Part shown: positions 18,545 through 47,500 of the stretch, piece after piece
Numbering within the stretch: position 1 is the stretch's first letter
Layout of the letters: each line of letters starts with the position of its first letter
Assembly (NCBI RefSeq): GCF_011386835.1
Contig: NC_088810.1
Coordinates: 24,180,001-24,244,000 of the forward strand
DNA from: Chrysemys picta bellii
Taxonomy: Eukaryota
Reading direction: 5' to 3'
DNA length: 64,000 nucleotides
Program-made: the position numbers and the translations under genes
Notes under the pieces: generated by a model
Databases searched by the model: none
What the model was told of the DNA's origin: nothing
What the model saw: the letters and a program-made list of their open reading frames with translations, nothing else

Positions 18545-19275
18545 GTGGGTCTGTGCGTGTGACACCAGAGGTGTGTGTGTGCCTGCGCATAAGACCCTGT
18601 GTGTGTGTGTGTGCGCGAGAGAGAGACCCTGTGTGTGCGAGATCATGTGACTCCACATGTGACCCTAAGTGTGTGAGAGAGAGAGAGACCCTGTGTGTGT
18701 GTGAGATCATGTGACTCCACATGTGACCCTGAGTGTGTGAGAGAGATCATGTGACTCCACGTGTGACCCTGTGTGTGTGAGAGACCCTGTGTGTGTGAGA
18801 GAGAGACACTGTGTGTGTGAGATCATGACACTCCACGTGTGACCCTGTGTGTGTGAGAGACCCTGTGTGTGTGAGAGAGAGACCCTGTGTGTGTGAGAGA
18901 GATCATGACACTCCACGTGTGACCCTGTGTCTGTGTGTGTGAGAGAGAGACCCTGTGTGTGCAAGATCATGTGACTCCACGTGTGACCCTGAGTGTGTGA
19001 GAGAGAGAGAGACCCTGTGTGTGTGAGATCATGTGACTCCACATGTGACCCTGAGTGTGTGAGAGAGATCATGTGACTCCACGTGTGACCCTGTGTGTGT
19101 GAGAGACCCTGTGTGTGTGAGAGAGAGACCCTGTGTGTGTGAGATCATGACACTCCACGTGTGACCCTGTGTGTGTGAGAGACCCTGTGTGTGTGAGAGA
19201 GAGACCCTGTGTGTGTGAGAGAGATCATGTGACTCCACGTGTGACCCTGTGTGTGTGAGCGATCACGTGACCCAG
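18545..19275. repeat. (GT)n/(GA)n-based minisatellite with GATCATGTGACTCCACGTGTGACCCT cores, upstream of the CREB3L4 coding exons
   Basis: About 11 core copies visible directly. Confidence 0.93.
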
Positions 19276-20638: not shown

Positions 20639-23600
20639 ATGGGGGAGCCCGGCAGCCCCGCACTCCAGGCTGTTCTCTTCGAGCCGTTCCCCACCAGCAC
20701 CGTACCGAGCCCAGATCCCCCGTTCGCCCTCTCAGAGCAGGCTCCCGCCCTGGAGAAGGGCTTTGAGGAGTGGGCAGTCAGCGGGGGCAGCGTGAGTCGG
20801 AGGCCAAATGCAGGGGGGGGAGGGGAAGGGCAAGCCGGGGGCTCAGACACTCCCCAGGTCACCTGCTCTGCAGCCCGGGGGCAGGAGCAACATAGCCCAG
20901 GTCGTGGGGTCCGCGCTTCCCAGGGCCCTGCCCCAGGGCCTTAGCCCCATGGGGCCCTGCCTGCCTCCCTGGGGGGGTAAGGCTGGCCTGGCCCCTCCCT
21001 GCCTGGGGGATCCCTCTCTGCCAGCCTTCTAAGGCAGCCACCTCTGGGGAGGGAGCCAGCAGCGGTCCCACCACATGCAGCCAGGGGCCAGAGAAGGGTC
21101 CCATTGGGCTTTGGCCCGGGCAAGGGAGGTCAGGCCCCATTCGCGGCAGACGGGCCCTGGCATTGCCGAAAGCGCCAGCAGGCAGGGCCTGGGCGCCCCA
21201 GCCCCATTCCGAGGCCTAGCACCGCCCACCACCCCGAGGTGCCCCCTTCGGCTCCTGGGTGTCTCCCAGCCACATACCAGCCCAGCCTGGGCTGCCTCCC
21301 GTGCCGGGCAGGCCAGGGCTGCCGGCCCCAGCCAACGTCCCCGGTGCCCGTTGCAGGGGCTGAACGACAGTGAGCCCGAGGACTTCCTCAACGTGCTCAT
21401 CGACCCCAACGAGGTGTACAGCCCGGGCAGCGACAGTGGCATCTCGGACGAGCCCAGCTCAGCCAGCCCCCAGCCCAGCGAGGGGGCCCCCGCCGCCTTC
21501 TGTGACCAGAGCGCCCCCCTCAACAGCGACGTGGTCTCCATCCAGCTGGGTGAGCGCGGCGCGGGGCAGCCGGCCCTCTGCTGTCCAGGGCGGCTGACTC
21601 TGGGGCACGGATCACAGCAGCGGAGACGCCGGCGCTGGGCTCCCTGCCCCTCCCAGGCTGGTGTTTAGTGGGGGGGGGGAACTGCAGCCTTAGGGCGAGG
21701 GGAGTCAGTCGTCCCCCCGAATGCTCCACGCTGCCCCTTGTCCTGCCGATGGGGCGGGCCGGCGGAGATGAGCGCTCCCAGCGTGCAAGGGGGCAGCTTG
21801 AGACAGCCACGTTGCATGCTGGGAGCTCCCATACATGCCCCCCTGTCCATCCCTTCCACTGCCCCCCCCATCTCTCTGTCTGTCTGCTGCACTTTGTACC
21901 CCGGAGCCCCGACGTCACCCCAGGCCTTTGCCCCTCACCCCAGGAACAAGAATCAGCATTTGAGCCCCCGCCGGCCCCGAGCCCCAGCAGCTCCTCCCCC
22001 CTCCCAGCTGGGAACCAGAGAGGTGTGGGGGGGGGGCTGAGGGCAGCGTCTCAGGCCCCCACGCCCAGGGACGCTCGCCCAGGTGGAGGTGGGCCGTGGG
22101 GATGGGCCAGAGGAGCAGAATCCCCACTCAGTCCCGGCCTTAGCGCTCCCGCCCCGCCTTTCCCAGGCTGGGCACACGGGACGGGGCTCTGCCCCAGGGA
22201 AGCAGCCATCCCTGCCTCATCCCTGACCCCCGTGCTCTGTCTCTGGCCCCAGGTGACTGGTCGTCCCCCCTGCTGATCCCTGACGCCTGCATCGTGAATG
22301 AGCTGCCGTCTGCACCCCCGTCCGCCCTGGCCAGGCCTGGCACGGTGCCCATGGTGGTGAGCGCTGGGGACATGCAGGCAGCTGTGACCCTGGTGAGTCG
22401 GGTCAGGATCCCCTCCTCATGCTGGACTGTCCAGCGGGGGCTCGGCTCCCCCCTGCCCCCAGCAGCAAGGAAAACACTTGGTTTTCCCCTGGTCCCAGCC
22501 CCACGCCCCACGCCCCACGCCCCACGCCCCCCACCTGTAGCTGAGCAGCTGCCCACAGTGCCCGAGGTGCCGCCCGTTCCCCAAGCCCTCTCTAGGATCA
22601 GAGAGAGTCGTGCCCCTCCCCGGCCCAGAGGGATGGGGGGGGGGATGGGGGAAGGGGAGGGAGGACCCCGCCCCGGGCTCTGCAGAACGTGATTCTCTCC
22701 AGCAGCTGCAGTTCCCGGATCTGTTCCTGACGGACGAGGAGAAGCGGTTGCTCTCGCAAGAGGGGGTGTCCCTGCCCCGTAACCTGCCCCTCACCAAGGT
22801 ACAGGAGCCAGCGGGCGTGAGTGTGCGGGTGGGAGCCAGTACCGTCCGGAGCGTGCAAGGAGCGTGCAAGGAGCGTGCAAGCCTGCACGAGGGCACGGGA
22901 GCGTACCCATGTGCGCAGGCCCAAGAGGAGAGGGTGACTGCTGGTGCACGTTTGCAGGGCAGAGCCTGTCCACAGGGGAGCCCATCCTGCCTCAGGCATG
23001 CGGCCAGCAGGTTTTATGACTCACCAGCTCCACCAAGCCGGTGCAGCCGGCCCCAGGGCAGGGAGTGGCCAGTCCAGCGCCACCCACCTGGCCCTACCCG
23101 CCCCTGCAGGGCCTGAGGGCTGGGAGCCCTCCTCATGCCCAGGGCAGGCAGGGCTGCAGCCACAGAGAGGCTGTTAACCCCCAGGGCAGGGGAGCCCTGG
23201 GGAGGCTCAGACCAGAGACAAGAACAGGGACTTGCCCCCCCAAACCAGCTCCCTGCAGCTGGGACCCCTGAAGCCTGGGGGGACATGAGCTGCGCTGCTG
23301 GAGGGCAGGGGGAGACGCCCCGGTGAGATTTCAGGCGGCGTCTGCCCCCCAGGCCGAGGAGCGACTCCTGAAGAAGGTGCGGAGGAAGATCCGGAACAAG
23401 CAGTCGGCCCAGGACAGCCGGCGGCGGAAGAAGGAATATATCGACGGGCTGGAGAACCGGTGAGAGCGGGCCCCACCCGTGCACAGACCCCACCCGTGAG
23501 GGCACTGCCGGCCCTGCTCAGAGCCAGACACCGGAGCATCCCCCACTGCCGAGCTGACCCTTCTCCGGCAGAGCCTGTGCCACGGGCACCAGGTGTCTGG

Positions 23601-26651: not shown

Positions 26652-27749
26652 ACCTTCAGCCCTTGTCTAGATTGTACTGAGCACAACACGTCTTCCGTTC
26701 GTCTCGTATCCTGGCCTTCCTCCTCCACGTGCGGCCAGGTCTTTTCACGCTAACATCTTCCCAGCTCTTTGGAGGTCGTCCGTGGTCATTTCAGTTCCCG
26801 CGGGGACCGCTGGGTGACAGCTGCAATCCATCGATTGTCAGTGAGACTCACTAGATGCTGGGCCCATCGCCTCACTGTACCTGCTCTCAACGACGACGTC
26901 CCGCACTCCACTCTGCTTCCCTGGGGACTCGGGCGCGGGTTGAAGTTCCCAGAATTGTTCTTTCCCTCGCCCGCTCCGTGACAGACAGTTGCTGCTCCTC
27001 TGTCTTCGTCAGCGCTCACGTTTCGCTGCCGTACAACCTTGCTGGCCGTACCGTTGAGTGGAAGAGGCTGGCGCGTGTTGCCTTGTTGATTTTTCCTTGA
27101 CGGGCAATCGTGAAGATCTAAAGAACTATCGTCCAATAGGCCTGCTCTCGCATGTCTACACATTCCCTTCCTGTAGTGCCTTCGTCAACGATGAAAACGC
27201 GTTCGACGGCGTAGAGACCAGTGCGGGGCTGAAAGCTCTCACAGAGCAGGGCATCGACACAAACTATATCAAACTACACAGGAAGCAAATTCTGATGGCA
27301 CTACCGCTATAACTTTGTTTGATACCCCCCTTCGCACCCCAGGTAAGAAAGGTGTGAAACAAGGAGAGACGGTTTCCCCGAAACTCTTCACAGCCTGCCT
27401 CAAAATGTTAATGCGGCGGATGAATTGGGAGGGTGGAATCAACATCAACGGAGAGCAGTGAAACCATCTCAGATTCGTGGACGATATTGTGTTGATCGCT
27501 GAAAATACTACCAGCCTAGAGAAAATGCTACGAGAACTCAAGACAAAAAGCAGCCAAGTTGGAATGAAAATTCACCGCTCCAAAACGAAATGTACGCGGT
27601 TTGGTACCTGGCCGAAAGCCCGAGTAACAATCAGTGGAGAACCAATCGAAGACGTTGAGCAATACGTCCATTTGGGCCAAGGAATGAGCATCAGGAAGGT
27701 GAGCGCTCGCGAAGAACGAAAGCAGGTTGGGGCACATTCAATTCTCTCA
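26652..27749 (-). mobile_element. 5'-truncated, 5'-inverted RTE-clade LINE copy, decayed, with a 14-bp TSD
   Basis: + strand 27101-27749: GNREDLKNYRPIGLLSHVY, AFVNDENAFDGVET, KGVKQGETVSPKLF, HLRFVDDIVLIA (RT motifs). - strand 27100-26652: QGKINKATRASLFHSTVRPARLYGSET*ALTK...RWAQHLVSLTDNRW...GRPPKSWED (RTE C-terminus). Flanks AGGAGGCTTCTGAC (26638-26651) and AGGAGGCTTTTGAC (27750-27763). Confidence 0.92.
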
Positions 27750-29659
27750 AGGAGGCTTTTGACTGGAAGGAAATAAGTAGCCGCAGTCAAGCTCCGCCCA
27801 CAACCCCCAAACTCCTCCCACAATTCCACATTGCCCAGCTGTTTCTACTAAAATGCTCAGCCAGGCAATTGTCCACCATTAGGTTCCAGAGTCAGCACTG
27901 TACCCCAGGCTGCTGGCGCCTCTCTCTGTGCTCTCTGCTGACCCGTGGGGGGGGGGTGTTTCGTGGGAACCAAAAGGGCTAGAAATGTGCCGTTTTAGAC
28001 TAAAGCGTTAATGCTGCCGGCTGCACGAGGTGCAGGAAAAGGCTGGTCTGGGCGGAGCCTGCCCCCGGCCCGTTGCAGGGAGCTGGGTCGTATCGCAGGG
28101 CGTGCTAGTGGCACGGCTGTTTTCTGTTATGAGCCCCCACCTACCCCGTGCCAGTGGTGGGTGGTGTCTCTGGTTAATAAACTATCCTGTTTAGTTTTCA
28201 CCCGGCTCTGGGCTGGTCTGGGACGGGCGGCTCCGGGCGCAGAGAATGAGAACACATTGCTGTGAGGATCTCAAAGCACCTAACCAGCTCCGCAGAAACA
28301 TGGGGTTTGCTTCACCTAGCACTGAAATGCAGCTACCTCTGGGGGGGGCCTCAGCAGCTGTGCGACAGCAACGTACACAACAGATTGGGCCCGGAAGTGA
28401 AGAAAAGGATCAGATCCAACCGGAACAACAAGGGGAAGCCTGAGCTGGAGGCAGGGCTAAGACACCACAACCTGCCAGGGGTGAATGTCATATCTAATCG
28501 CAGCCCCCCCTCGCACAGAGCGCACCCCTCCCCCACACCCTGCAGCACAGGGCATGGGGGTCAGCACGGCTGCCAGGGGAGCCCCTCAGCCCCAGTGCTG
28601 CTGGGCCGGGCTCTGTGTCCTGCTGCCGCTGGAGGGAACAGGGCACGGGAGCTGCCTGAGCCGACGCCGGCCCCACCTGGGACCGACACGGGGGGCTCCG
28701 GCCCTCGCAGGGCTCTGCTGATGGGCTGAGCAGGGCGAGGGCCCAGCCCTGGATTTTTGGCTCTACACAGAGATGGCAAAAAGCCAGTAGTGCCAGCGTT
28801 AGCGCTGCCTCCCGCCGCCCTCCTCCTCCGGTGCCCAGGGAGCCGGCTGCCTCCCGAGCGCCCCGGCCCCGCAGCAGCCCCGGGCCTGCCCGCACTGGGT
28901 GTTCAGGGGGGCTCCTGGGCATGGAGCAGCCGGAGTCAGGGACTCTGGGCGCCCATCAGGCCGGCTCCTGTCCGGTGCCACTCAGCCCCTGGCTAGAGAC
29001 CTTAGGCTGCCGGGGGCTCATTGTCCCTGCCCTGGGCCCTGCTGCAGATGCTCGTGCCCCCCAGTGGGGCGTTGGGATCTGGGGCGGTTGGCACCCCCCA
29101 TCCCCCGTTGGGGCCGACACACAGGGAGGGGCCAGGCCGCAGCGCCAGGCTCATTCCCACATGGCTGAGCTGTTAGAAGCTGCAGCCCGGGCCCCCCCCG
29201 TCCCCCCGCCCGCTCGCCTGCCCTGAGCCCCCGGGCATTTGCGTCACTCAGGGAAGGAGATTTCCGGCCACGTGGGCGAGATGAGCTGTTCAGGGAGCCC
29301 CTGAACCCCAGCGCTGCACTAATGAGGCAGCTCGGGGGCCCAAGGGGCTGCTTGGCTGGGGCTGGCGGGGGCCACTGTGTGGCTGGGGGTGAAGGGGGGG
29401 CACCGGATTTTCCCACGCGCCATCGTGATGGGTCTGCTCCAGCCAAGCCCCCGCGTTCTAGCCCCATGGGGGGGTTCTAGCCCAGCCCCCACTCTGATGG
29501 GGCCCCTCACTCTCGTCCCACAGCCCCCTGCTAGCTCAGCCCTGGAGCCCCTCCCTGGCTGCGTGAGGCAGATTAATATGAATGGCTTTTAGCTGAGGCT
29601 TCCCCACGGACTCATCCCTCAGCGAGGAGCGGCAGCAGGGCTGGCTCCAGAAAACCAGG

Positions 29660-29765: not shown

Positions 29766-32072
29766 ACAACACGAGTCGCCAGCCCCCTTGGGTGTCTGTG
29801 ACGCTCCGTTAGTGACCAGACGGACCCGGGGACGGGCCATGACCTCTGCCGTGGCTGCAGCCAGACTCCTGGGCCAGCCTCACTGACCCCTGACATAAGG
29901 GCCCAGGGGGCCAGGAGAGACCAAGAGGCTGATGGGATGGAGCTGATCCCCATCTCCGCTCGTGCCCCCCGGCTCTCCCCCCACCGGGGGCCACCAAGCC
30001 CCTTTTCTCCTCAAACCCAACTGCTCATCCGCAACCCCCCCTTCCAACCTCCACTGGTGCCGCTCCCCCATCAGCCACCCCGGGGCGCTGCTGGTCACCC
30101 CCTGGCCAGGCACCCGACGCGCCGCAGGATGTGGTTAATCCCAGTGCAGACTGGCGGGATTACGGGGGGGGGGGGGGGCGGATTAGCAGGGCTTGTCCAT
30201 CCCTTACATAACCCGCCACATGGCGCGCAGGGCCGGGGGGCGGGGACTCTGCTGATTTGGATTCATGGAGGGGACTGGCGCTGGGCCAGTGGGGGGTGGG
30301 GGGGTCCCTCGGGCCGGCGCCTCGTACTCGGGGGAGTGACTCGTTCTAGCAGCTTGGGGGCAGGAAGGCGCCTGTTAGCGCCCGCGCAGCGATGCCGGGC
30401 TGGTGGGGCAGGGCTGGGGCCGGCTTTCTCCCTCCCCCCAGATCCACCCGTTGTGCCAGGCGCTGCCCAGAGACCTCCCAACCCCCCATGACACCTCAGA
30501 TCCATCTGCTGCATGTGGGGGGAGCTCGCAGGCCCCTGCCTCCCCACAGCACTGGCTCTGCCCAGCGTCCCCAGGCCCTGCACTGGGCACAAATCCAGGG
30601 TGAGCTCACGGGGATGGGCGAGTGCCAGGCGGGAGCCAGGCGCTGTCCCACAGGGGGCGGCATCCCTGGGGGCTGGCACCGAGGGGCCAAGCGGCTCTGC
30701 GACAGCAGCTGCAACCAAAACCCCCGTCCATACAAGGGCCCATCTGCTCCTGGTCCAGCCGGGCACACTGCCCCATGGAGTCGAGGATAGCCCCATCACG
30801 ACTGAGCTCGAGGCCGTTGTGCCAGGCGTGGGCCAGGCCCTGCCCCGAAGCGCTCGCAGCCAGGGCAGGCAGAGGGGCAGGGACTGGGCTGTCACCCAGC
30901 AGGGCAGCGGGTAGAGCCCGGGTGCCCTGACCCCCAGCGGGCGGGAACGTGCAGAGCTCCTGGCTCGGGGCAGAGCCTCCTCCAGTGGCTTAGAGGGGAA
31001 AGCCTGAAGCTCGGGAGTGCCCAGCGCAGTCAGCGTCTCTGCCCGGGGCCTGGCACGGGCTGGCGGCTGGGAACGCCAAGGTGCCCAGATGCCAGCAGCC
31101 CTGCTCACGGCCCGGGAGGGCAGCAGCTGCCAGAGGCATGAGGGCTCGCGCGTAACCTTGGCGACAGGGTGCATTCGGGGACCCCCCCCCCCCGTCTGCA
31201 GCAGGAACTTGTAACCTGGTTCCATTGGACAGCTGCAAATGGGGCCCGGGCCCTGTGCCCACAGCCCAGTTCTGACACGGGCCAGGGGAAAGCTGCCCAG
31301 CACCCACCTGGCAAAGTCAAGCAGAGCTGGGGCGGGATTTGATCTGTCCTGGGGCAGAACCGAGCAGGGACGGGTCCATTGTCCCTACACTGGCTCCAAC
31401 CCCACAGCAAACAGGGGAAAGCGCTGCTCCCGGGAGAGCCCCGGCAGCCAGACGCCTCCTCTCGGCTCACGTGCCGAACAATCGCCGAGCTCCTTGGGAT
31501 TTGGTCCAAGCTCAAGTTGTCAGCAGGATGGAGAGGTGGACACGGGCGAGCGCGGGAGCCGGCGCCTCGGGGACGGACAGACAGATGCTGTGATTAGCTA
31601 GATGGTGCACATGGGCCCAGCCAGAGCGCTCTGCCGAGAGACAGATGAGCGCTGAGGGGATAGATACCCAGACACCGAGATTAGCTGGATGGACGGGCGT
31701 GGGGGGGGACAGACACACACCGACAGAGAGATTTCGCTGCCCGTTGCTCAGCTCCCGAGGGATTTGTTACATTTAATTCCCCTCTTCTTCGCCAAACACA
31801 TTTTAACCCTCTCATAAATATTAACGCCCCCTCGGGCGCCTGGCTCCAGCCCCCCCATGACTCCTCCATTCATCCTACTCCCCGCAGCCTCCTGTGGCAG
31901 CAGCCCCCCGCCCCCTCAATGGGGGAGGAGGTCCCTGTGCCAGCCCCTGGCGTGCTGCCCCCAGCCTATCAAACCTCAGCCCCCTCCCGGCGCGTGGGCT
32001 GGGCGCGCGGCTTGCCAGGCCAGTCTCTCCCTGCGCTCGGAGAGGCACATTGGCACCAGGCACCAGTCCTGC

Positions 32073-32093
32073 CCCAGCACCGAGGACAGCTCC
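32073..32093 (+). promoter_or_regulatory. RE1/NRSE (REST-binding)-like element immediately upstream of the CART-like ATG
   Basis: CCCAGCACCGAGGACAGCTCC versus consensus NTCAGCACCNNGGACAGCGCC: both half-sites intact and canonical 2-nt spacer. Confidence 0.75.
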
Positions 32094-32098
32094 CCGCC

Positions 32099-33827
32099 AT
32101 GCAGCGATCCACCATGGTCCTGCTTTGCCTGGCTCTCCTGGCACACCAGGAGGCAGATGTGGATGCCCGGCTACCCCAGGACTTTCCCCTGAAACACTCG
32201 TACCAGCCGCATGAGAAACAACTGGTGAGTTCCTATGTCCAGCCTGGCGCGGGCGCGCCCTGCCGTGCCACCCCCCAGCGCCTCCCACGGGCCAGGGCAT
32301 TCACCCCAGCCTGGCTGCCTGTGACTGTGCATGCACACGCGCCTCCTGGTGACCCCCGGGGTCCCTCACGGCCCCGAAGGCTGAGGTAGTCTGGAGAAGG
32401 GCAGGGCAGCCCCGCTGCAAACCCCGGAGGAAAAGACTCTTAGAGGCCAGGTGGAGACCCAATGGGGGCAGCGTCGCCCCATCACTGCGGGGTTCTTGCT
32501 CTTTCCTCTGAAGCGGCTGGTGCTGGCCAGCGTCACAGCCCAGTCCCTGTGCTCCATGTGAGGACAGCTGGTTGGGACTGTCTGCTGCAAAGGGGAGCAT
32601 GGGGGGAGAGGGGCTGGGCAGGCAGTTTTCAGCCCCCCAACTGGCTGTGTCAGTTTCACGAGAGGGTGAAGCCAGGAGCCCTGGATCAGGCGGGGCAGGG
32701 GGGGGGGGGCAGGGTAACTCCCTGTCACACCCGCTCCTTTAACAGAGCAGCAATTTCCCGCAGACCAGCGCCTCCAGCCTGCCCGGGGCAGCAGTTTGCA
32801 CTCACCCTCCTCCTTCTCCTTGTCTCACCCCACCCAGCTGGAGGAGCTGCAGGACGTGCTGGAGAAACTGCAGAGCAAGAGGATTTCCACCTGGGAGAAG
32901 AAACATAACCAAGTCCCCAAGGTACCGGCCGGGGCCGACCTGGCCCCTTCTGGTTCCGTGGCTAGAGGATCCCTGTGGGTAACAGGCCCCAGCTTCCATT
33001 TCTCCGCCCGCCCGCCCAGCGGAGTTTGTGAGAGTCCCTCTTCCAGGGGCAGCTCCCTGGCTGGTGGGGCCCTGCCGTGCTCCCTGGGGATCGGTCGGTG
33101 ACCAGCCACGCTCCAGGCCGAGGGTTTGCTTTAGCAGGCTAGGTGCAGGGTGGGGGCCTGACCCGGGCCCAGCAGAGCCAGACAGGAGCATTTTGGAGCC
33201 ATTAGAGCAGGGGTCCTCAACCTTTTTCGTCTGGCGGGCGACGGACGACAGGCCACCGCGGACCATGGCCGGTGGACAAGCATCCACTAAAATGCCGCCG
33301 AGAAGCGGCAACGTCAATAGGCTTCGAAAATCAGCAGCATTTCGGTGGTGACGCCTCTGGAGGACGCTGCTTCTTGGTGGCATTTCAGCGGATGCTCATC
33401 CGCCAGACAGTACGCGGGCACAGATAGATGCCCCGGTGGGTGGCATGGCGCCCGCAGGCACCGCATTGGGGACCACTGCATTCGAGTGATGGGGAAAGGG
33501 CAATTAACCAGAGGTGCCAACGCTGGGATAGGGCCCAGCCCCCACTTGGGAAGCCAGTGCCCACCCAGCGAACTGCAGGCCAGAATACAGCCCCTGCCCC
33601 ACAGGGGAATCGTACTGACCCCCGAGACCCTGCTGCTGAGGGGTTTCAGGGGCCCAGCGGTAAGCCAAAAGGCCCCTGTCGGGGGGAGCCCTACAGCTCT
33701 GCCTCCCTTGTCCCCGCAGTGCTCCATCGGCCAGGCCTGTGCCGTGAAGAAGGGCGCCCGCATCGGCAGGTTGTGCGACTGCCCCCGCGGAGCCACCTGC
33801 AACACCTTCCTCCTCAAATGCCTGTAG
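32099..33827 (+). CDS. CART (cocaine- and amphetamine-regulated transcript) prepropeptide paralogue, 105 aa; join(32099..32224,32838..32921,33720..33827)
   Basis: MQRSTMVLLCLALLAHQEADVDARLPQDFPLKHSYQPHEKQL|LEELQDVLEKLQSKRISTWEKKHNQVPK|CSIGQACAVKKGARIGRLCDCPRGATCNTFLLKCL*. Six-Cys CART core, KR and KK cleavage sites, phase-0 introns with 84- and 108-nt exons as in CARTPT. Alternative start at 32114 (ACCATGG). Symbol left blank because the paralogue number is uncertain. Confidence 0.95.
33208..33478. mobile_element. hAT-superfamily MITE (271 bp) in intron 2 of the CART-like gene
   Basis: TIRs CAGGGGTCCTCAAC / ATTGGGGACCACTG; 8-bp TSD CATTAGAG (33200-33207) / CATTCGAG (33479-33486). Confidence 0.88.
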
Positions 33828-34679
33828 CCGCTGCCTGCGAGGGACCCCCAGCCGCAGATCATCTTCTCATGCCGCTTTGTGTTGTGCTGCACGTGCCTCC
33901 ACTTCCCCCGGGCAGGGTGCCAGGGTGGCTGGCAGTGGCCACGCTGCTCAGCAGAGCCCAGAGGAAGGGGGTGGTGATAGACGGTGGCAGGGCCAGCGTC
34001 TGCTCCAGGAGTCTGCCGCAGGGCTGGGGTCTCCTGCTGTCTCCAGGGCAGCCCCAGGTGCTGGGCACACCCCCTCCCCGGCAGCAGCACGGCCCTTTAG
34101 ACTACGGCAAGGGGGCCACAGCCTCCCCTGGCACCAGTTGGCCCTGCTGAGCCCCCACCACTCCCGGCCTTTAAGTCCCCCTAGCACTTGAGAGAGGGAC
34201 ACTTTGGAACATGGGGCCCTGCCAACAGGCTCCTACATCCAGCTGCGTGCAGCCTGAGCTGCCCTCCCCCCGCTGGCTCTATGCCCAGGGCCCCAGCCCT
34301 GCCAAGACCTAGGGCCATGTTTACCCCTGTCCTGCTGCTCCAGGGGTCACGACTTGCCCTGGTCCCTACAGCACTTTGCAGGCCTCAAGCTCCACGAGGG
34401 ATTCGGGTGCCTGAGCCCAGCCTCCCGCTCCTCCGACCACCCTGTTCCCAGAGGCCCTGCTCAGCCGAGACGGTGAAACCAGGGCTGCAGGTTTGTCTTG
34501 CTTTCAGTTGCTGCCTGCAGCCCCCTAGCTCCCCCAGCACACCTCGCCACCCAGCCCCACCTGGCCCCCTTGCCACCCAGCCAGACGCTTTGACCTCACA
34601 GCCAAACCAAACCACTGCTTTGAAAGGATTTTTAATGACATTCCTGGTTCCATTTGGTTTTGTAAAAGCCTTTTAAAAA

Positions 34680-34685
34680 AATAAA
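34680..34685 (+). terminator. Probable polyadenylation signal of the CART-like gene
   Basis: First AATAAA after the stop (~850 nt), in an AT-rich patch. Confidence 0.6.
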
Positions 34686-37318
34686 CCCCAACCGGTCGAG
34701 CTGAGCCAAGCGTGGCCACCTGCAGCCTCTGTCTAGCGGGCAGGTGACACCCCCCAGCGACCCGAGACCGCAGCGGGACTAGACTGGAGGGAGAGCAGAG
34801 GGGAGGATTCGAGCCAGCCTGTTCTTGGGAACCGCCAGGCCTGGGTGAGGGTCTGCCCCAGAGACCCCTGGCAGCACTGGGTCCCAGGTCACCAGCTCTG
34901 CAGCCTGGCACCAAGGGTCAGTCGCCTCAGCCCCACGGAGCAACTGAGCCCAGGGCTCGGCCCCGGCAGCACTAAGGAGACCGGAACAGGAGGGCTGCAG
35001 GTACCAGGGCGGGGGAGGGAGCCGTGAGCTGTAACTCTCCCCTTTGGGGAGCAGCAGGAGCTCTGCGGGGCTGGTCGGGCGCCTTCCTGGGCCAGTCCCA
35101 CAGGGAGCGACGCTAGCTGCACCGGGGGGACGGTTGTGGGGCGCTCTGCTGGGGGAGGTTGGAGGGTGCTGTACAGCAGTGCACGGGGCTGCTCTCCAGC
35201 GAGAGGGGGGAGCAGCTGGGCGCGTGGGAGGACATGCCCCCCCGGAGCAATGACATGGAACCTCCCTCAGCACAAGGGCAGCCCCAGGAGACAAGCCTGA
35301 ATCTCAGCTCCAGCGGCGCTCACGCTCCCCTCCCTGCCGATGTTTGGGGCGCCTGAGGGAGGGCTTGGCCCACTGCCCCTTCCATGCACCGGCCGGTAAC
35401 ACCCGGAGACAGGCCAGCTCATGGGGGGAGGGATGTTTAAATGGCGCTCCAGACCCCAGCCCAGCTCGCTCCGGCTGGGGCAGGAACAAGCAGGCTGCTG
35501 GGAAGTTCCTAAACACCCACGTCAGTCTCTTCTGTCCCCCTGCAGGGCTGCCCCGACCCTGCTGTGAGCCCGGGCAGCCCAGAGAACATGGCTGGGAGCT
35601 TCCACCCCCCTCACCGTTCCCGAGGTGCAGCCGGGACCGGCGACACTCAGCGCTTTAATCAACGTTACCCTAGGGAGTTTAGGAGGTGCTGGTCCCAGCC
35701 AGCGCTGGAGGGAACCCACCTGCAGGGGGCATGGCTCCCTGGTCTTTGAAGGGGGTAATTAGTGACAGCTGTGACATGGGCTCCCTGGCATGCTCAGATC
35801 ATTGCCCGCAGGATGGGACAGGAACACGGACCACTGAACTCAGACTGATGCCCATTACCAGCACCAGAGACCTCTCCTCCATCCCCTCCCATCACCCAGC
35901 CGGCCCCTGCACAGCAGGGCGCAGTGTGACAAGACACGTGGTTCCCGGGAGACTGGGCCGGCGGAGCGGGACTCAGCGCTGGGACTTACCCCGGGAGCTG
36001 GACACTGATCAAAGCCCTAAGCCCAGGGGACACCGCCAGGCCCCCGGGGCAAATCTTTGCCCTGCCTGTTGCTCCAGGCCCCCAGCTGGGAGAGACGCTG
36101 GTTTGGCCGGGACTTGCTGCCCTAGAACCGGGGTGACGGGGACATGAGGGAAGCGGCTAAGCTGGGCGTTCCTAGGAGGAAGGGCACATTGGTGCCCAGA
36201 GGCCTGGCTGAGCTCCCTCCACACCTGCAGGAGGCGCTGTGCTGGCAGGGGTAATAGCATCAGCCCAACACGGCTCCCGGGGAGGGGCAGCACCACTCCA
36301 GGACAGTGGCCAGCCCAGCAGTTTCCTACCACAGGGATCCCGGCAACCCCACAGGCAGCCGGGGGGAGCAGCTCCCCCATCCCCTGCAGGCGGCTGCATC
36401 ACGGGCAGGCAGTGCTGGTCACCGTGCCCACATCTCCCCTGATCCTGGCACTCGTTAAAGCAGAGCCATGGGGCTGGTCTAAGCTCAATGCAAACAGGCT
36501 GGACAAGCTTCGAGCCCCTCGTGCCCCCGGCACCAGCACGGAGCAGCAGGGAAGCGTGTGCCAGGACCTGGCCTGCTGCTCTGGGGTCATGGGACGGGTG
36601 CACCCAGGGCAGGGAGAGGGCTGGCCGGACTCCCTGAGCAGACAAGCCAGGTGCCCGGGACTACACGTCACCCTGAGGGAACGGAGGAGCCGCTCAGCCA
36701 GGCAGGGTCACGCTCCGCTCCGGCAGGAACTAGACAGCAAGTCCCCCCCAGCCTTCAGCCTGTATTAACCAACAGCCTCCCTCACTGCACCGGGCTGGAC
36801 AGCCAGCACAGCAGGGCACTGGCTGCCCAGAGGCAGCTCCTGCATCCAGGCTCAGGGTTTACTGTCTCAGAACCTGCGGAAGGAGGGGGGCTGCGTTAAT
36901 GCTGAGGGATGCAAGGTGGCAGCCCCCACTGGGCACACGCCCCATATCCCACCAGGAGCTGCCAGTCACAAAGGGACTCCTCGTGCGCACTGACGGCAGG
37001 AGAGAAGGGGCTAAGAAGGGATGGGACCCCAGCCCTCCTCATGGCAGGTGAGATGGACCGAGGGGAACCCCCAGCCGGCTGCTGAGTCTCCAAGGAGCAA
37101 GCCGAGTGGCGTTCGGCGTGGCTCTGAGTTGGCTGAACCACGCTCCCAAGCGGTCAGAGAGCTGCTCTCTGCCAGGACACAGCAGATCTCGGTCTCTGAC
37201 GCCAGTCTCCTCCTCCTGCAGCTCCCTGGAGCGGGAAAGGGGATTAGCATCCGTGCCCCAGTTCCCCACACAGGAGAGGAGGTGGGCAGCACCGGGGCTG
37301 CTGGGAGGTCGACAGATA

Positions 37319-39709
37319 CTAAATGGACTCGATCTGCTTGCGAACTTTCTCCAGGGCCTTCCTGTCCAGCACCCTCTGACGGCACATGACCAACAGGGCA
37401 AAGACCACAGCCACACAGATCATGGCCCCCTCGAACTTCCAGAAGCTGTGTGCTTCCGTCACCACGGAGCGGCAGCTGCAGAGAGAGGAGAGAGTCGACA
37501 GGGCTGGGATCGGAGCGCCGCACGGCTTGGCCAGCGGATTACAGGGGAGTCTGGCTGCAGTGGGCCCCATTATAGCCATGCTAGGTGCAGTCTCCTCCCC
37601 CCGCCCCCCGCCAAGCTGAGGTGCTCCGGATACAGCATGAAGCAGCCACGCCCAGGAGCCCAATGTGCCTCCCCGGGCTCTGTTCCAGTGAGCCCGGGCC
37701 GCCCCACACTGCGCCTGAGCCAAACCGAACTGCAGGGTCCCGGCCTTGGCTTACCTCCTGTACTCCTCCTTCTTGGACACGGCGCAGTTAATTTGCTCGA
37801 TGAAGCCAGTCGTGCTGCACTCGGGCATCGTCTTCTGCAATCAAACCAAACCCACTTTCACACACTCTGTGGGGCAGGCTGTCTCATTCCCCCTGCCAGC
37901 CCTGAGGGGTCTCTGCTCTGCGGGGCACAACAGCTGGTGTCCCCCCACCCACCCTGAGGGATCTTCAGGCTGACCCAGGCAGGGTGCATCCCATGCAGCA
38001 CTCCCCAAGCAAGGGGCCAGGGCAGGGTGTAACCACCAGCACTAGACAGCGAGCCCCCCACCCCCAGCCCTGCTACCCAGCTGCAGGGCAGTTCGTCTCC
38101 ACTTACTGCTTGGAAGATTGTGCATGGGGCACAATCCAGAACAACGACAAAGTCTTCTGCTTGCCAGCATGGAGTGGCCACCAGCGGGCTCACTGAGAAG
38201 AGAGGGGAGAGGGGTTCAGAGTCTGGGCCTGCAATCGGAGTGGCCAGGCTGCAGAGAGGAGGTGCCACTTTGGATAGAAGGGCAGACGACACCCAGGCAG
38301 AAGAAAGATTTGACTGTCAGCACTCGTCAGGTTTCCACTGAGTCTAACAAGCTTGTGAGTGACACTGACTGAGCCCCAGCAGAGCACATGCCAGGGCGGG
38401 GGGGGCCCCCCCAAGAAAAGTGTCTTTGATACTTTCTGGCCAACAGCCTCCCCCCATCCCTACGATGTCACCAAGGGAGTCTGGGTCAAACCCAAACTCA
38501 GTGTGGGGAGCCAGGAGCTCCAGGCTCTGCCCCCCGTGAGTCACCCACCCCCAGGCCCTGCCCCTAGGACTGCCCCTCACAGGAGAATTAGCGCATCTGG
38601 AGCATGTGCATCCTCATTGCAATGGGACTCTCTGCTGGGACTCTCAGTCCCACACAGAGGCCCCAGGGATAAACCCCACTGTGTGTGTGTGTGTGTGTGG
38701 GTGTGGCTGAGGACTTGCATTATGGCACCGCAGCTCGCCCCGGGGGGCTCAAGTGCGGGGGCTTTATCTCCAGGAAGAGCCGTGCTCCTGCCCTGACCCC
38801 GCAGCCAGTAAGAGCTCGGCAGGCCAGACGGGTGCCAGCTCTCCAGAAACCAGCCCCGCAACCATGGGCACATTAGCAGCGCCAGCTCCACTGCCCTGGC
38901 ACCCACCTGAGCGCTTGGCCTCACTCGACGCCGTCGCCTCTGCCAGCCTGCAAGGAATCAGAAAGGGGCCAGTGTAGTAAACCAGGGGGGCTCTCGGGAC
39001 CGAGCAAGGGGGCGGCTCCACCCCAGGGCCCTGCCCAGCCAGGGGGCCAGGGCCGCTCACAGGCTGCCAAAGCCACGGGGGCTTCGCCCGGCTAAACCCT
39101 CAGCCCCTGCCCCGCACCTGCGGGGCCTCCAGCGCCAGGCCCCGGCTCCCCACGGCCAGAGGGTGGCTCCGTGGGGGGGTCAGGCGGGGGGCCCAGCTGG
39201 GTGGCACAGGCCAGGGGGGGTCCAGGCGGGGGGGCGAGGGGGGGCAGGGCAGGCAGAGCTCCCAGCGGGAAGGGGTCGGGGCAGGGCGGCAGCGGGGGGT
39301 CCAGGCGGGAGAGGTCGGGGGGGCTCCCATTGGGGGGGCCCGGGCAGGGCAGCAGCAGGGGGGGCCCGGGGCAGGCGGGGCTCCCAGAGCAGGGCCGGGC
39401 GGGGGCTCCAGGGGGGGTCGGGGGGGCTCCCAGCGGGGGGGCTCCCATCGGGGGGGCTCCAGGGGGGGTCGGGGCAGGGCGGCAGCGGGGGGGTCGGGGC
39501 AGGCGGGGCTCCCAGCGGGGGGGGTTCAGGGGGGGTCGGGGCAGGGCGGCAGCGGGGGGGCTCCCAGCGGGGCCGGGCGGGGGGGCCCCAGGGGGGGGGT
39601 CGGGGCAGGCCGGCAGCGGGGGGGTCTCCCCGGGCCCCGCTCACCTGAGGCTCCAGGCCAGGGCGCCGAGCGCGAGCAGGACGCAGCGCCCCAGCGCGCG
39701 CGGCTCCAT
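37319..39709 (-). CDS. JTB: Jumping translocation breakpoint protein, 142 aa; complement(join(37319..37475,37755..37834,38107..38192,38907..38947,39645..39709))
   Basis: Signal peptide MEPRALGRCVLLALGALAWSL; PCWQAEDFVV..CAPC, ECSTTGFIEQINC, FWKFEGAMICVAVVFALLV TM and RQRVLDRKALEKVRKQIESI C-terminus match JTB. Phases 2, 1, 0, 2 are consistent. Confidence 0.95.
39160..39625. repeat. G-run-rich degenerate repeat (GGGGGGCTCCCAGCGGGGG / GGGGCAGGGCGGCAGC) in JTB intron 1
   Basis: Repeated G5-G9 tracts. Confidence 0.75.
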
Positions 39710-41518: not shown

Positions 41519-44500
41519 CTAGACCACGGCGCATTTACTGCTGCTTTTCTTTGGAGAACTTTTCAAGTCCAGGTTCCCTTTGGGGATTTTACCCTGAAAG
41601 AGAGAGTGAGCCAGTCACTGTCGGGTGCCCTTGCAGCCCGGGGTCACTCAGTGGGGGCACTCTCCTCTGAGCCAGGGCGGGCCCCATGCCCCAGGATGGG
41701 CTCCCTATGAGTAGTGTGACTGTGCCAATGCCCCGACAGGGCACTAGGGGGCGCTGTGCTGCTGGGAGTGCGGTCTGGGGTCTGGCTTCGCCACCAGGGG
41801 TCATTAAAGATCCCAAATTACTGCCCTGGCCATGTTCCAATGCAGGGTGTTCCCATCAGCCTTAGATACCGTAGCCTCACCAGCGTCCTGGCCTGGCCTG
41901 CTGTATAGCACGGCAGTGTGATGGTTAAACAGCTTTTGCGCCCCACTCCAGAGGCAGCTGCATCTCAGCACCAGACGAGGGATCCCTGTAGAACCAGTCC
42001 CCATGCCCCACCCCAGAGGTGGCTGCATCTCAGCACCAGACGAGGGATCCCTGTAGAACCAGTCCCCACGCCCCACCCCAGAGGTGGCTGCATCTCAGCA
42101 CCAGACGAGGGATCCCTGTAGAACCAGTCCCCACGCCCCACCCCAGAGGTGGCTGCATCTCAGCCCCAGGGGAGGGAAGTGCTGGAGAAAAGCAAGATCA
42201 TTCACAGGGAAAGGCAGATTCATGCTGCTTTTCTGTCCCCATCTCAACGCCTCCTGCTGGAAGGAGGCCGAGCTGCGCAGGTCACCTCTAACTCAGGGGG
42301 CTCCCTAGCCCGCCTGGACCCCGCATGCTCACCAGTTTCTTGGTGGATTTCAGCAGGATGTCCTGGGCCAGGGTGTTGAAGGCCTGAGGGGAGAGAGGAG
42401 CAGGTTACGGAAGGCCAGCCAGGGACACTGGGGTGGGGGCTGTGAGCTGGCTGGGGGAGGGGACGCTTAGCAGTGGGAAACAAAAGCCTCTGGGTGAATC
42501 TTAGCGTCCCCCTCTCCCCGCTTCCATGGGAGCATATGGGGAGGACCTGCCTGTGGGCCAGAGGTCCCGAGGGTGGGTCTCACAGCTTCACTGGAGCCCC
42601 CCACTCAGTCCATTCCAGGGATGGGCAAGAGATCTGCCTGGGGTCCTCCTACAGCCCAGATACTGAGAGAGACCTCTCTTCCCTCCCCAGGGGCACTGCA
42701 CCACCCACCACCCAGCCCCTGGCAGCAGCCCTCCTGGGCCGGCCTGGGGGCTGCTTCTCCCAGGCTGCCCCTAGGCAGTGAGCGCCCAGTGCAGGGGGCT
42801 GGAGGCACAACGGGGCAGGGCCCAGGGACCTCGGGGAGTCGTCCCCTGGGAGGGAGCCAGGTCCCACTCCGCTTACCTCCTCCACATTCACACTGGACTT
42901 GGCACTGGTCTCAAAGAACCGGATCCCATGTTCCTTTGCGAGCTGCCAGGAGAGAAAGGGACCTTTGAGCCAGGCACCCACAGCCCCCCCGACCTCCTTC
43001 CCTCTCGCTAATGGCCGAGACCCAGCACAGCTGCCCCTCCATCCCGGGGAGACACAATCACGGCCTCAGAGACACCCCAGGACGGGGGTGAGATGGGAGG
43101 AGCAAGGCCTGGCCCTTGGGACTCTGCTGCATTCAGCACCGCTGGGGGCTGCCACCCTGTGCCCAGCTGTCCCCACCCCCCGATCCAGCCATGAATGACA
43201 GTGGCACTCGTGCCACCGACCTGAGGTCCCCTCCCGCCCCCCCGTACCTTCTCTGCACTCTCCCGCTGCACCTTGCGCTTGGTCTCCATGTCACACTTGT
43301 TCCCCAGGAGGAGGCGCTCCACCCCCGCAGAAGCGTTCTGGAGGAGAGAGCAGATCTGGGGGAGATCAACCCCTGGGCCCCGAGCCCACCATCCATCCCC
43401 CCTCTGAGTCCCCCTTCAGCCATCCTCCAGGTACCCCCACCCCTCCCTCACATCCCCAACCGGCCCCCAGTCCTGCATTCGCCACGGTCACAACTCTGCC
43501 GGCGCCCCTTGCTCCTGACCCGCAGCCCCCATCCGCCAGCGCCCCTCACTCCCGACCCGCAGCCCCCATCCGCCAGCGCCCCTCACTCCCGACCCGCAGC
43601 CCCCTGCCCCCATCCGCCTCCGCCGGCGCCCCTCACTCCCGACCCGCAGCCCCCTGCCCCCATCCGCCTCCGCCAGCGCCCCTCACTCCCGACCCGCAGC
43701 CCCCTGCCGCCATCCGCCTCCGCCGGCGCCCCTCACTCCCGACCCGCAGCCCCCATCCGCCTCCGCCAGCGCCCCTCACTCCCGACCCGCAGCCCCCTGC
43801 CCCCATCCGCCTCCGCCGGCGCCCCTCACTCCCGACCCGCAGCCCCCTGCCCCCATCCGCCTCCGCCTCCGCCCCTCACTCCCGACCCGCAGCCCCCTGC
43901 CCCCATCCGCCTCCGCCCCTCACTCCCGACCCGCAGCCCCCTACCCCCATCCGCCTCCGCCGGCGCCCCTCACTCCCGACCCGCAGCCCCCTACCCCCAT
44001 CCGCCTCCGCCGGCGCCCCTCACTCCCGACCCGCAGCCCCCTGCCCCCATCCGCCTCCGCCCCTCACTCCCGACCCGCAGCCCCCTACCCCCATCCGCCT
44101 CCGCCGGCGCCCCTCACTCCCGACCCGCAGCCCCCTACCCCCATCCGCCTCCGCCGGCGCCCCTCACTCCCGACCCGCAGCCCCCTGCCCCCATCCGCCT
44201 CCGCCCCTCACTCCCGACCCGCAGCCCCCTGCCCCCATCCGCCTCCGCCGGCGCCCCTCACTCCCGACCCGCAGCCCCCTGCCCCCATCCGCCTCCACCG
44301 GCGCCCCTCACTCCCGACCCGCAGCCCCCTGCCCCCATCCACCTCCGCCGGCGCCCCTCACTCCCGACCCGCAGCCCCCTGCCCCCATCCGCCTCCGCCC
44401 CTCACTCCCGACCCGCAGCCCCCATCCGCCTCCGCCCCTCACTCCCGACCCGCAGCCCCCTGCCCCCATCCACCTCCGCCCCTCACTCCCGACCCGCAGC

Positions 44501-47500
44501 CCCCTGCCCCCATCCGCCTCCGCCGGCGCCCCTCACTCCCGACCCGCAGCCCCCTACCCCCATCCGCCTCCGCCGGCGCCCCTCACTCCCGACCCGCAGC
44601 CCCCTGCCCCCATCCGCCTCCGCCCCTCACTCCCGACCCGCAGCCCCCATCCGCCTCCGCCCCTCACTCCCGACCCGCAGCCCACTGCCCCCATCCACCT
44701 CCGCCCCTCACTCCCGACCCGCAGCCCCCTGCTAGCCCAGCCTTGAACAACTTGTAACCCCACATAACACCTCATGTGGGTGGTGACCAGACCATGGCCC
44801 TGGCACAGCCCCCCCCCCCCCCCCCCCCCGCACCTCCTTGATGCTCTTCATCCAGTTCTGGATGTTCTCGAAGGATTTCTCATCCGTGATGTCGTAGACG
44901 AGGATGATTCCCTGGAAGAGACGCTCGCTCAGTGGGGCTGGACCCGGGCTCTAGGCCCCTGCTAGCCTGGCCCTCAGCAGTGCCCAGAAGCCCCCCAATG
45001 GTTAATGGAGCAGCTTGGACCGAGCACCTCCCACCCCCGTCGCCTGGCAGGGGCCCGGGCCCCAGATCCTCCGGATGGCCCACCAGAGTCCCAGGCTAGC
45101 CCCACTCCCTCCAGTGGGGCCCACTGAGATAGAGGCACTGCCCTACTCCCAGCTGCACTGTCGGGGGGGGGACATGGGCTTCTCTGAGCCCCCACATTCC
45201 CCTCCCTGCTTGGCAGGTGCCTGCTGCCAGGAGCACTGCGCCAGACTCCCCTTCCTGGGGCTTCTGGGCCCTATTCCCAGCTCGGCCACGGGGGTGCCCT
45301 GGCAAGGCTGGGCCCAGCGCCGTACCATGGCTCCTCGGTAATACGCCGTCGTGATGGTTTTAAACCTCTCCTGTCCTGCCGTGTCCCTGCGAGAGAGGAG
45401 GGGAAAGGGGGTCACTGGGGTCAGCAGCGTCTCCAACCCCAAGGGCTGCCCTGGGATCCATGGGGGGAGTGGGGGGATTCCTGGGGCAACCACCCTGCCC
45501 TGGGGGACCCTGGTTCTGCCTCCACGGCTGACCCAGCCTCGGCCCCCCTGCCCAGGAGGACGACAGGCGCTGGTTGCTGCTCCGTGGGGTGGGGGCGGAC
45601 TGGCGACCCGCAGCAGGGCACAGCCGCCATCCATGGGGCTGCCAGGCCCTGAACCGGCAGCCCAGTGCGGGCAGGCTCCGGATCCCCCCTTCCCAGCCCC
45701 GGGGCCATGGCAGTACCCCCCAGCCCGCCCCTGGCCCTGCAGGTGCTAGGCAGGGCTCTAGCTGTGGTGCGGCTGGAGACGGGGGCTGGGGGTAGCTTTG
45801 CTGGGGACGGGGTCCCACTTACCAGACCTGGAGTTTGATCTTTTTCCCCTCAATTTCCACTGTCCGGATTTTGAAGTCGATCCCTGGAACACAAGACGGT
45901 TGACGCCATCAGAGCCGCAAGGGGAGGGTCCAGGGGCCCCGGCACGACCCCCACCCCGGGGCCAGGCCAACAGCAGCGCTGGCCTGGGGTGACTGGACTC
46001 ACACCTGCCCCCAGCACAGGCTGTGTTGGGGTGGGGTGGGGGGCGGGGATGGGCCAGCCTGGGGCTGTATTCCCACTCTCCTGTCCTGCAATATTCACCC
46101 TTCCCCCAAACCCAATCCAGCCCCCAGCCCCCCCCCCCGCACATCTCCGGTCTCCCAGCAACAACCTGACGCCCCAGGGAGCAAAGTCCAAGGCGGGTGC
46201 CCCCCCGCAGTGAATAAACAGGCTGCAAGCGGGTGGGAGCGCAGAGCCCTTGGTCTCCCGCAGCAGCCGCTCAGGCGGACGGGCCGAGGATTCCTGAGCC
46301 TGGCATCACGCCCACACCCCCCACTGTCCCGCTATTGTCTGGCTGGCTGCACATGGCGGCGGGGTGGGGGGAGCCAGACAGACGGAGCCCCCCCAGCCTG
46401 TCCCTGCCCAGACCCTCCCTGCCAGGGACGCTGCATGTTGGGTAGGGGGGCCGCCCTCGCGGGGGGCAGGTTCCTGCCCCGTTTCCCAGGGCGGGCAGAG
46501 GAATGACGCAGCCCCGACCCCACTCTCAGCCTGGCACCAGGGACCCCACATGCAGCATCCCTGGTGCCCCCCCCCCCGCCCCAGCACCATGGAGCAGGCT
46601 GCAGCCCCTCGCAGGCTCAGGACGGGGGCAGCTCCAAGCAGCCCCCCAGGGGAGGAGATTTGTGGTCAGTGGGGTTCGGAGTTTCCAATGGAGATTAAAG
46701 ATTGCAGCCCCCGCCCCCCAATGACTTCCAGCCCCACTGCCCCGCCCCTCTCCAGCCCTGCTCCCAGGCATCACCCCCGGACCCCCGGCACACGAGGTGC
46801 ATTTGGAGCTGTCTCCCAGGGCACGGAGCTGGGCTGGAGCCAGTCGGGGGCAGTCCTGCCTGAGCAGCTCTGTGGGGCTGGCAGCAAGAGGGCCCCCTTG
46901 CAGATGGAGACGCCCCAGAACCACAGCGGGCAGAGATCCGGGTAGTCCTACATGGAGTGAGGCTGATCTACACGACCTGGCCCTCAGACCCTAGTGACGG
47001 GGGGCCCGGGGAGGGGTCTGTGGAGCCAGGGCTGCCCTGGCAGCCAGAAACAGACCAACCGGGGGCTCTTGAAGCCCTCGGGAGATGGGGCCAAGGGTTT
47101 GGCTCTGTCCCTGCAACTCCCATGGGAAGCCCCGGCAGCCCAGGCCGGCTGCACCCTCCCGCCTGCCCCCGGAAGCTCTTGCCATGCGGGGGTTTGCAGA
47201 CCTCGCCGCTCACGGCCAGGAGGCAGAATGTGACCGGCCCAGAGGCCTGGCTATAGTTCGGGGTCCCCACCCGCCGGCCCGGCCTGCACAGGCAGGACAA
47301 GTGGCTGCGAAGCGGAGCTGGGAACAGAGGCCTCGGGGGTGGGAGGGGACTTCCTGCCAGCAGCTGGGGCACATCCCCACCGACCCACTGGGACTGGGGC
47401 GAGCTGGAGCAGTGGAATTCCCCGCCGGGCGCCCCGAGCGCAGGAGCCTGTGTGTGAGGCACACGGATGCGTCAGGCTGTTTACGGCTCTATAAGCACCG

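Follow-up and report, generated by a model that had tools for sequence, protein, structure and literature searches.

A spliced CART-family gene between the CREB3L4-like and JTB genes of the painted turtle, very probably an orthologue of CART6

In a 64,000-nucleotide stretch of contig NC_088810.1 from Chrysemys picta bellii, the whole of which was analyzed and is hereafter called the window, a three-exon CART-family gene was found that is very probably the turtle orthologue of CART6, situated at its ancestral place with CREB3L4 on one side and JTB on the other. In mammals, CART peptides have regulatory roles in feeding, stress, and reward; their receptor is still debated. Non-mammalian vertebrates possess up to seven CART genes, of which CART6 is the least studied. 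In the explanation that best accounts for our observations, early bony vertebrates had six CART-family neuropeptide genes, and CART6 was among them. The gene has been described before, having been named CART6 in 2015 and annotated in related species; new here relative to the 2015 paper are the spliced-RNA evidence, the explicit assignment of the neighboring genes, and the detection of CART6-like genes also among amphibians, bichirs, and teleosts. That paper (Cai et al., 2015; PMC4436185) was the sole one found in the literature to use the name CART6, and neither it nor the other literature searched offered expression or functional data for this gene.

An earlier note made from the letters of the window had claimed a complete three-exon prepro-CART gene with KR and KK sites, six Cys residues, and a poly(A) signal, and every one of these elements was indeed found. 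As summarized in Table 1, the coding exons comprise 42 codons, 28 codons, and 35 codons plus the stop codon, respectively; both introns have GT...AG ends, all junctions are in phase 0, and the joined exons (318 nt) encode a precursor of 105 amino acids. The N-terminus of this precursor carries a hydrophobic stretch, MVLLCLALLA, as a putative signal peptide, followed by the dibasic sites KR (residues 56-57) and KK (residues 63-64) and by Cys residues at 71, 77, 89, 91, 97, and 104, with the spacing C-x5-C-x11-C-x-C-x5-C-x6-C-x at the C-terminus. The Pfam CART profile (PF06373, curated cut-off of 27 bits) matched exon 3 with 63.5 bits, spanning positions 36-70 of the 70 in the profile, and exon 2 with 31 bits, spanning positions 8-34, both above the cut-off. 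Exon 3 could moreover be aligned over its full length with the human CART peptide structure 1HY9, 26 of the 35 residues being identical and the six Cys all kept. The coding part of CART genes is divided over three exons, of which the second holds the dibasic sites and the third opens at the first Cys (PMC13364575; Cai et al., 2015; PMC4436185), and the window gene was found to have the same plan. The AATAAA, situated 853 nt past the stop codon, was the sole canonical hexamer downstream.

Table 1. Features of the CART6 gene and its neighbors, with positions in the window
Feature	Position	Strand	Evidence
bZIP basic-region exon of the CREB3L4-like gene	open frame 23272..23460	+	Pfam bZIP_1, E=1.2e-8; 28-letter protein motif
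CART6, minimum 5' UTR	32044..32098	+	start of the X1 spliced contig
CART6, exon 1 (coding part): start codon, hydrophobic signal-like MVLLCLALLA, propeptide to HEKQL	32099..32224	+	translation; GT donor; same exon in 105-aa turtle proteins; covered by RNA contig
CART6, intron 1 (613 nt, GT..AG)	32225..32837	+	skipped exactly in X1 contig
CART6, exon 2: LEELQDVLEKLQSKR/ISTWEKK/HNQVPK, with KR and KK sites	32838..32921	+	AG acceptor, GT donor; Pfam CART, E=2.9e-7
CART6, intron 2 (798 nt, GT..AG), containing an apparent dispersed repeat at ~33200-33480	32922..33719	+	skipped exactly in X1 contig
CART6, exon 3: first Cys onward, six-Cys CART knot, TAG stop	33720..33827	+	translation; Pfam CART, E=2.2e-17; 1HY9 match, E=2.4e-15
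CART6, 3' UTR and AATAAA	33828..34685	+	RNA contig to 34612; AATAAA at 34680-34685; 3' end approximate
JTB, last coding exon, ending ...RKALEKVRKQIESI	open frame 37322..37750 (exon end at 37322)	-	Pfam JTB, E=1e-13, over positions 59-110 of the 110 in the profile; convergent with CART6
JTB, second exon	within 37861-38316	-	Pfam JTB, E=3.6e-5
Ras/Rab-family gene (Rab13-like) past JTB	42652..45745	-	four open frames matching Pfam Ras positions 54-152 in order

An in-frame ATG was also present at 31919, 60 codons before the CART6 start, with the frame open throughout (31919-32098), and it serves as the start of the 165-aa NCBI model for Trachemys and of a UniProt model for Terrapene. Because the spliced contig X1 described below begins at 32044, downstream of this codon, initiation at ATG 32099 (or at Met6, 32114) is likelier than at 31919, and the upstream extension is probably an annotation artefact.

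With regard to identity, the name CART6 was given by Cai et al. (2015; PMC4436185) to sequences from the green sea turtle (EMP28211, 105 aa), the painted turtle (partial), the Burmese python (XM_007429116), and the coelacanth (partial), the last of which was reported to have six CART genes. The protein P0121 of Chelonia mydas matched the sequence that S2 Fig of that paper gives for green sea turtle CART6, and the window protein was identical to P0121 at 97 of 105 residues (92%, eight differences). The proteins nearest to the window CART6 were all from turtles, and orthologues of 102-110 aa were found in over 10 species each of turtles and of squamates, which carry the NCBI label "cocaine- and amphetamine-regulated transcript protein-like". 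NCBI annotations were present for the turtle genera Gopherus, Chelonia, Caretta, Lepidochelys, Mauremys, Terrapene, Trachemys, Chelonoidis, Emydura, Macrochelys, and Pelodiscus and for the squamate genera Hemicordylus, Sphaerodactylus, Rhineura, Podarcis, Eublepharis, Elgaria, Pogona, Python, Heteronotia, and Crotalus. The suspicion of the earlier note that the gene might be poorly annotated was partly borne out. Among the UniProt models, those of Chrysemys, Chelonoidis, and Terrapene take in stretches of intron or incorrect exons, and at NCBI the Trachemys model begins at the upstream ATG; the gene has, however, been annotated automatically in many reptiles.

For evidence of transcription, four public runs were compared over positions 31900-34750 of the window. 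In run X1, derived from a relative that shares ~97.5% identity with the window (tissue, species, and RNA nature being guesses of the index), one contig of 1153 nt covered 32044-32223, 32837-32919, and 33718-34612. This contig skips 613 and 798 nt with GT..AG ends, that is, exactly both predicted introns, and therefore CART6 is transcribed and correctly spliced. Loss of both introns is as expected of mRNA and would be hard to explain by an origin from genomic DNA. All four runs also contain contigs whose depth (118-239) far exceeds the 11.5 of CART6; they begin at 34629-34643, where adapter letters precede them, and run rightwards towards JTB to ~35.6 kb; in run X12, a high-depth contig begins at 34004. 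On the simplest reading, the contigs from ~34629 represent a long 3' UTR of JTB, putatively on the minus strand, that abuts or overlaps the 3' end of CART6 near the AATAAA. Within intron 2, an element of ~280 nt (~33200-33480) that can fold into a long imperfect hairpin (-139.6 kcal/mol) was matched in several runs by numerous unrelated contigs of high depth whose ends were loose, and it looks like a dispersed MITE-like repeat. No second copy of it was found in the window, and an inverted-repeat search in intron 2 gave no exact-seed pair.

The window was ~95% identical to chromosome CM023071.1 of Trachemys scripta elegans over the shared 16 kb. Of the 315 coding sites of CART6, six differed between the two turtles, one of them non-synonymously (dN/dS of 0.06), and in the introns ~4-5% of sites differed (intron 1 being 96% identical, against 98% for the coding sequence). 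Between turtles and squamates, dN/dS of CART6 was 0.20-0.32, and the six Cys residues and the KK site were invariant in the sequences compared. The first dibasic site was KR in most turtles and KK in squamates; in Trachemys scripta elegans (P0127) it was KG, at the place of K56-R57 of the window protein.

From these signs of purifying selection together with the spliced transcript, we concluded that CART6 is a working gene in reptiles. It could be argued that the gene is transcribed but decaying, on its way to loss and devoid of peptide function, given the loss of CART6 in mammals and, it appears, in birds, the loss of the KR site in Trachemys, the missing last Cys in the JTB-adjacent copy of the trout, and the weaker conservation of CART6 relative to CART1, 3, and 5 (Cai et al., 2015; PMC4436185). 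We regard this as very unlikely, however, because no turtle or squamate sequence compared has a broken frame or is missing any of the six Cys, dN/dS has remained far under 1 through more than 200 million years, and splicing is correct.

The gene order in the window, a CREB3L4-like bZIP gene (+), CART (+), JTB (-), and a Rab13-like gene (-), agreed with the earlier note, which had placed the gene at the CREB3L4-JTB locus; a CREB3-type bZIP gene upstream on the plus strand and JTB downstream on the minus strand were both recovered by Pfam matches. The CREB3L4-like gene has further exons at ~21.3-25.84 kb, its last coding frame ending at 25841. A search of an atlas with this neighbor led to a CREB3L4 cluster (score 0.80, a lead only), and a second query with the N-terminal CREB3L4-like exon gave no usable match; the position of the gene and this weak lead point to CREB3L4, and we refer to the gene as CREB3L4-like. 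In human and mouse, JTB is flanked by CREB3L4 and RAB13 (PMC12562924), and by this order the window corresponds to that block with a CART gene between CREB3L4 and JTB.

As for the rest of the window, a LINE reverse transcriptase fragment (Pfam RVT_1, E=1e-7; 27462-27773) was found within 27058-27773, between the CREB3L4-like gene and CART6, where Trachemys carries ~1.1 kb of additional sequence. GC-rich minisatellites were located in an intron of the CREB3L4-like gene (24405-24841, about 11 copies of a 26-nt unit), in an intron of the Rab13-like gene (43569-44732, about 25 copies of a 50-nt unit), and upstream (18602-19261, two copies of a 322-nt unit). A tblastn search of the 64 kb with CART1, 3, 4, 5, and 6 queries detected no second CART exon, and with the CART4 and CART5 queries neither the window nor the loci of Trachemys and the lizard yielded another CART exon; CART5, the tandem partner of CART6, is gone from the window. 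The segment 31056-31181, which several CART queries matched by tblastn with E=0.02-0.2, was considered as a CART5 relic and rejected as a chance match, its translation being without the cysteine pattern. An Rfam scan of the whole window returned no matches, and a scan for bacterial promoters and terminators upstream of CART6, which is not applicable to vertebrate DNA, gave nothing useful.

The same arrangement was observed beyond the painted turtle, the order being bZIP(+) - CART(+) - JTB(-) in Trachemys and in the cordylid lizard Hemicordylus and bZIP(+) - CART(+) - JTB(-) - Ras/Arf-family(-) in Python, with a bZIP protein of 409-456 aa at the same place as in the window in all three. The order was CART - CART - JTB in the frog Pelobates fuscus, CART5-type - diverged CART - JTB in the trout Salmo trutta, and kinase - CART6-like - bZIP in the cyprinid Cirrhinus. 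A profile search of 1.8 billion representative proteins further detected CART6-like proteins in Pleurodeles, Pelobates, Leptobrachium, bichirs, and several teleosts, and in the tree of 99 sequences described below these amphibian, bichir, and teleost proteins grouped with the reptile genes. A single locus tag covers both the CART5-type and the CART6-type products of Pleurodeles, and the bichir gene spans 23 kb with nothing else called within 10 kb.

Several of these loci showed peculiarities of their own. The trout gene between CART5 and JTB (L004, 16505-17410) is a highly diverged, si:ch211-191i18.4-like CART that ends in ...FFLRSL and is thus without the sixth Cys, and exon 3 of P0311, another CART6-like protein of Salmo trutta, is only 55% identical to that of the JTB-adjacent copy. 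At the Python bivittatus locus (L005), CART6 exon 3 occurs twice (11493-11600 and 11743-11850), 250 nt apart, as either a local duplication or an assembly artefact.

No CART6 was reported in amphibians, bichirs, or teleosts by Cai et al. (2015; PMC4436185). Since a CART gene adjoins JTB in the frog and the trout and CART6-like proteins occur in amphibians, bichirs, and teleosts, CART6 is thus ancient and has been kept more widely than that paper stated, the fast-evolving teleost copies being candidate orthologues. These findings argue against a recent, reptile-specific origin of the gene as a tandem copy or retrocopy of another CART gene. Such an origin might be suspected from the fact that the closest relatives found by sequence search came only from turtles and squamates, the scores falling from ~127-136 bits to ~126 bits and below for fish CART3-type proteins; it is nevertheless very improbable, because both introns are kept, which speaks against a retrocopy, the CART6-like proteins of Pleurodeles, Pelobates, Leptobrachium, bichirs, and teleosts group with the window gene, a CART gene adjoins JTB in an amphibian (Pelobates) and in a ray-finned fish (Salmo), and CART6 has been reported in the coelacanth (Cai et al., 2015; PMC4436185).

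A bolder extension of the orthology reading, which we advance tentatively and hold to be rather less probable than its opposite, is that CART6 was retained much more widely, next to JTB in anurans and also in salamanders, bichirs, several teleosts, turtles, and squamates, as part of a block creb3l4 - CART5 - CART6 - jtb surviving in most bony-vertebrate lineages, and that it encodes a distinct peptide hormone lost independently in mammals and archosaurs. If such wide retention were true, CART6 would be a distinct, uncharacterized peptide hormone, possibly with a receptor of its own.

A maximum-likelihood tree was built from 99 CART cores (67 columns). The window gene fell into a CART6 clade with support of 92/96 (not starred), within which the turtle subclade had 99/97, and CART1 sequences, those of turtles included, fell outside this clade. 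CART4 and CART5 formed a clade of their own (99/98), and one salamander sequence nested oddly among the turtles. This pattern fits the published model in which an ancestral tandem pair was multiplied by the two vertebrate genome duplications.

A CART1-type query, in turn, revealed that separate CART1 and CART6 proteins coexist in the same turtles and squamates, with CART1 located on other, much larger contigs. The respective pairs of CART1 and CART6 were P0185 and P0004 in Gopherus flavomarginatus, P0204 and P0009 in Emydura, P0189 and P0136 in Python, P0186 and P0135 in Pogona, P0191 and P0011 in Hemicordylus, P0197 and P0129 in Sphaerodactylus, and P0206 and P0130 in Rhineura. The window gene is accordingly no CART1 orthologue, its relatives having a separate CART1 and its own neighbors being the CREB3L4-like, JTB, and Rab13-like genes. 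That it is nonetheless the 1:1 orthologue of mammalian CARTPT, relocated in reptiles, for which one could cite the 74% identity of exon 3 to human CART and the three-exon plan common to all CART genes, is refuted by the coexistence of CART1 and CART6 within species and is scarcely conceivable, as seven species have a separate CART1 much closer to mammalian CARTPT in addition to the CART6-type gene, the two lie apart in the tree, a CART gene occupies the same locus in a frog and a trout, and turtle CART1 was placed on another scaffold (Cai et al., 2015; PMC4436185).

Taken together, the separate CART1, the tree, and the synteny sustained the proposal of the earlier note that this CART paralogue, a gene other than CARTPT, was retained at the CREB3L4-JTB locus and disappeared from it in the human lineage. 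It is also in good agreement with the synteny-based conclusion of Cai et al. (2015; PMC4436185) that CART5 and CART6 were lost in humans and the neighboring genes remain.

By homology to CARTPT, the 105-aa product of the orthologue identified here would enter the secretory pathway by way of its N-terminal hydrophobic segment, and prohormone convertases would be expected to cut it after K56-R57 and K63-K64, yielding predicted C-terminal peptides of 48 and 41 residues. These would be held together by three disulfides in the arrangement I-III, II-V, and IV-VI (C71-C89, C77-C97, and C91-C104) and may act as secreted neuro-endocrine signals. Judging from its sequence, the 48-aa form may not be made in Trachemys and hence may not be universal. 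Mammals, for their part, would have lost CART6 and kept only CARTPT (CART1). The spliced transcript and the constraint established for CART6 should be useful for annotation and for comparative neuroendocrinology, and they leave unchanged the published view that, of six ancestral CART genes, mammals lost five.

Compared with the CART6 described by Cai et al. (2015; PMC4436185), the window gene has the same length of 105 aa, the same KR and KK sites, three exons, and the signature ...WEKK-x-NQVPKCS-x-G..CAVKKGARIGRLCDCPRG..CN-x-FLLKCL, and it differs in nothing essential, being the orthologue in another species. CART5 (the zebrafish cart3 type, ending in RCY), which is the tandem neighbor of CART6 in the coelacanth (Cai et al., 2015; PMC4436185), belongs in contrast to another deep clade together with CART4 (99/98), and the window holds no CART5 exon. 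With human CARTPT/CART1 (1HY9), the window gene shares the Pfam family, the six-Cys spacing, equivalent dibasic sites, an exon 3 opening at the first Cys, and the conserved propeptide helix EKxL...LQxVLEKLQ, whereas identity over the precursor is ~53-56%, the N-terminus of the peptide reads NQVPKCSIGQA in CART6 and GQVPMCDAGEQ in CARTPT, and the KKG of CART6 stands against RKG in CARTPT. The two also differ in locus, CART6 residing between CREB3L4 and JTB and being absent from mammals, and CARTPT occupying a locus of its own.
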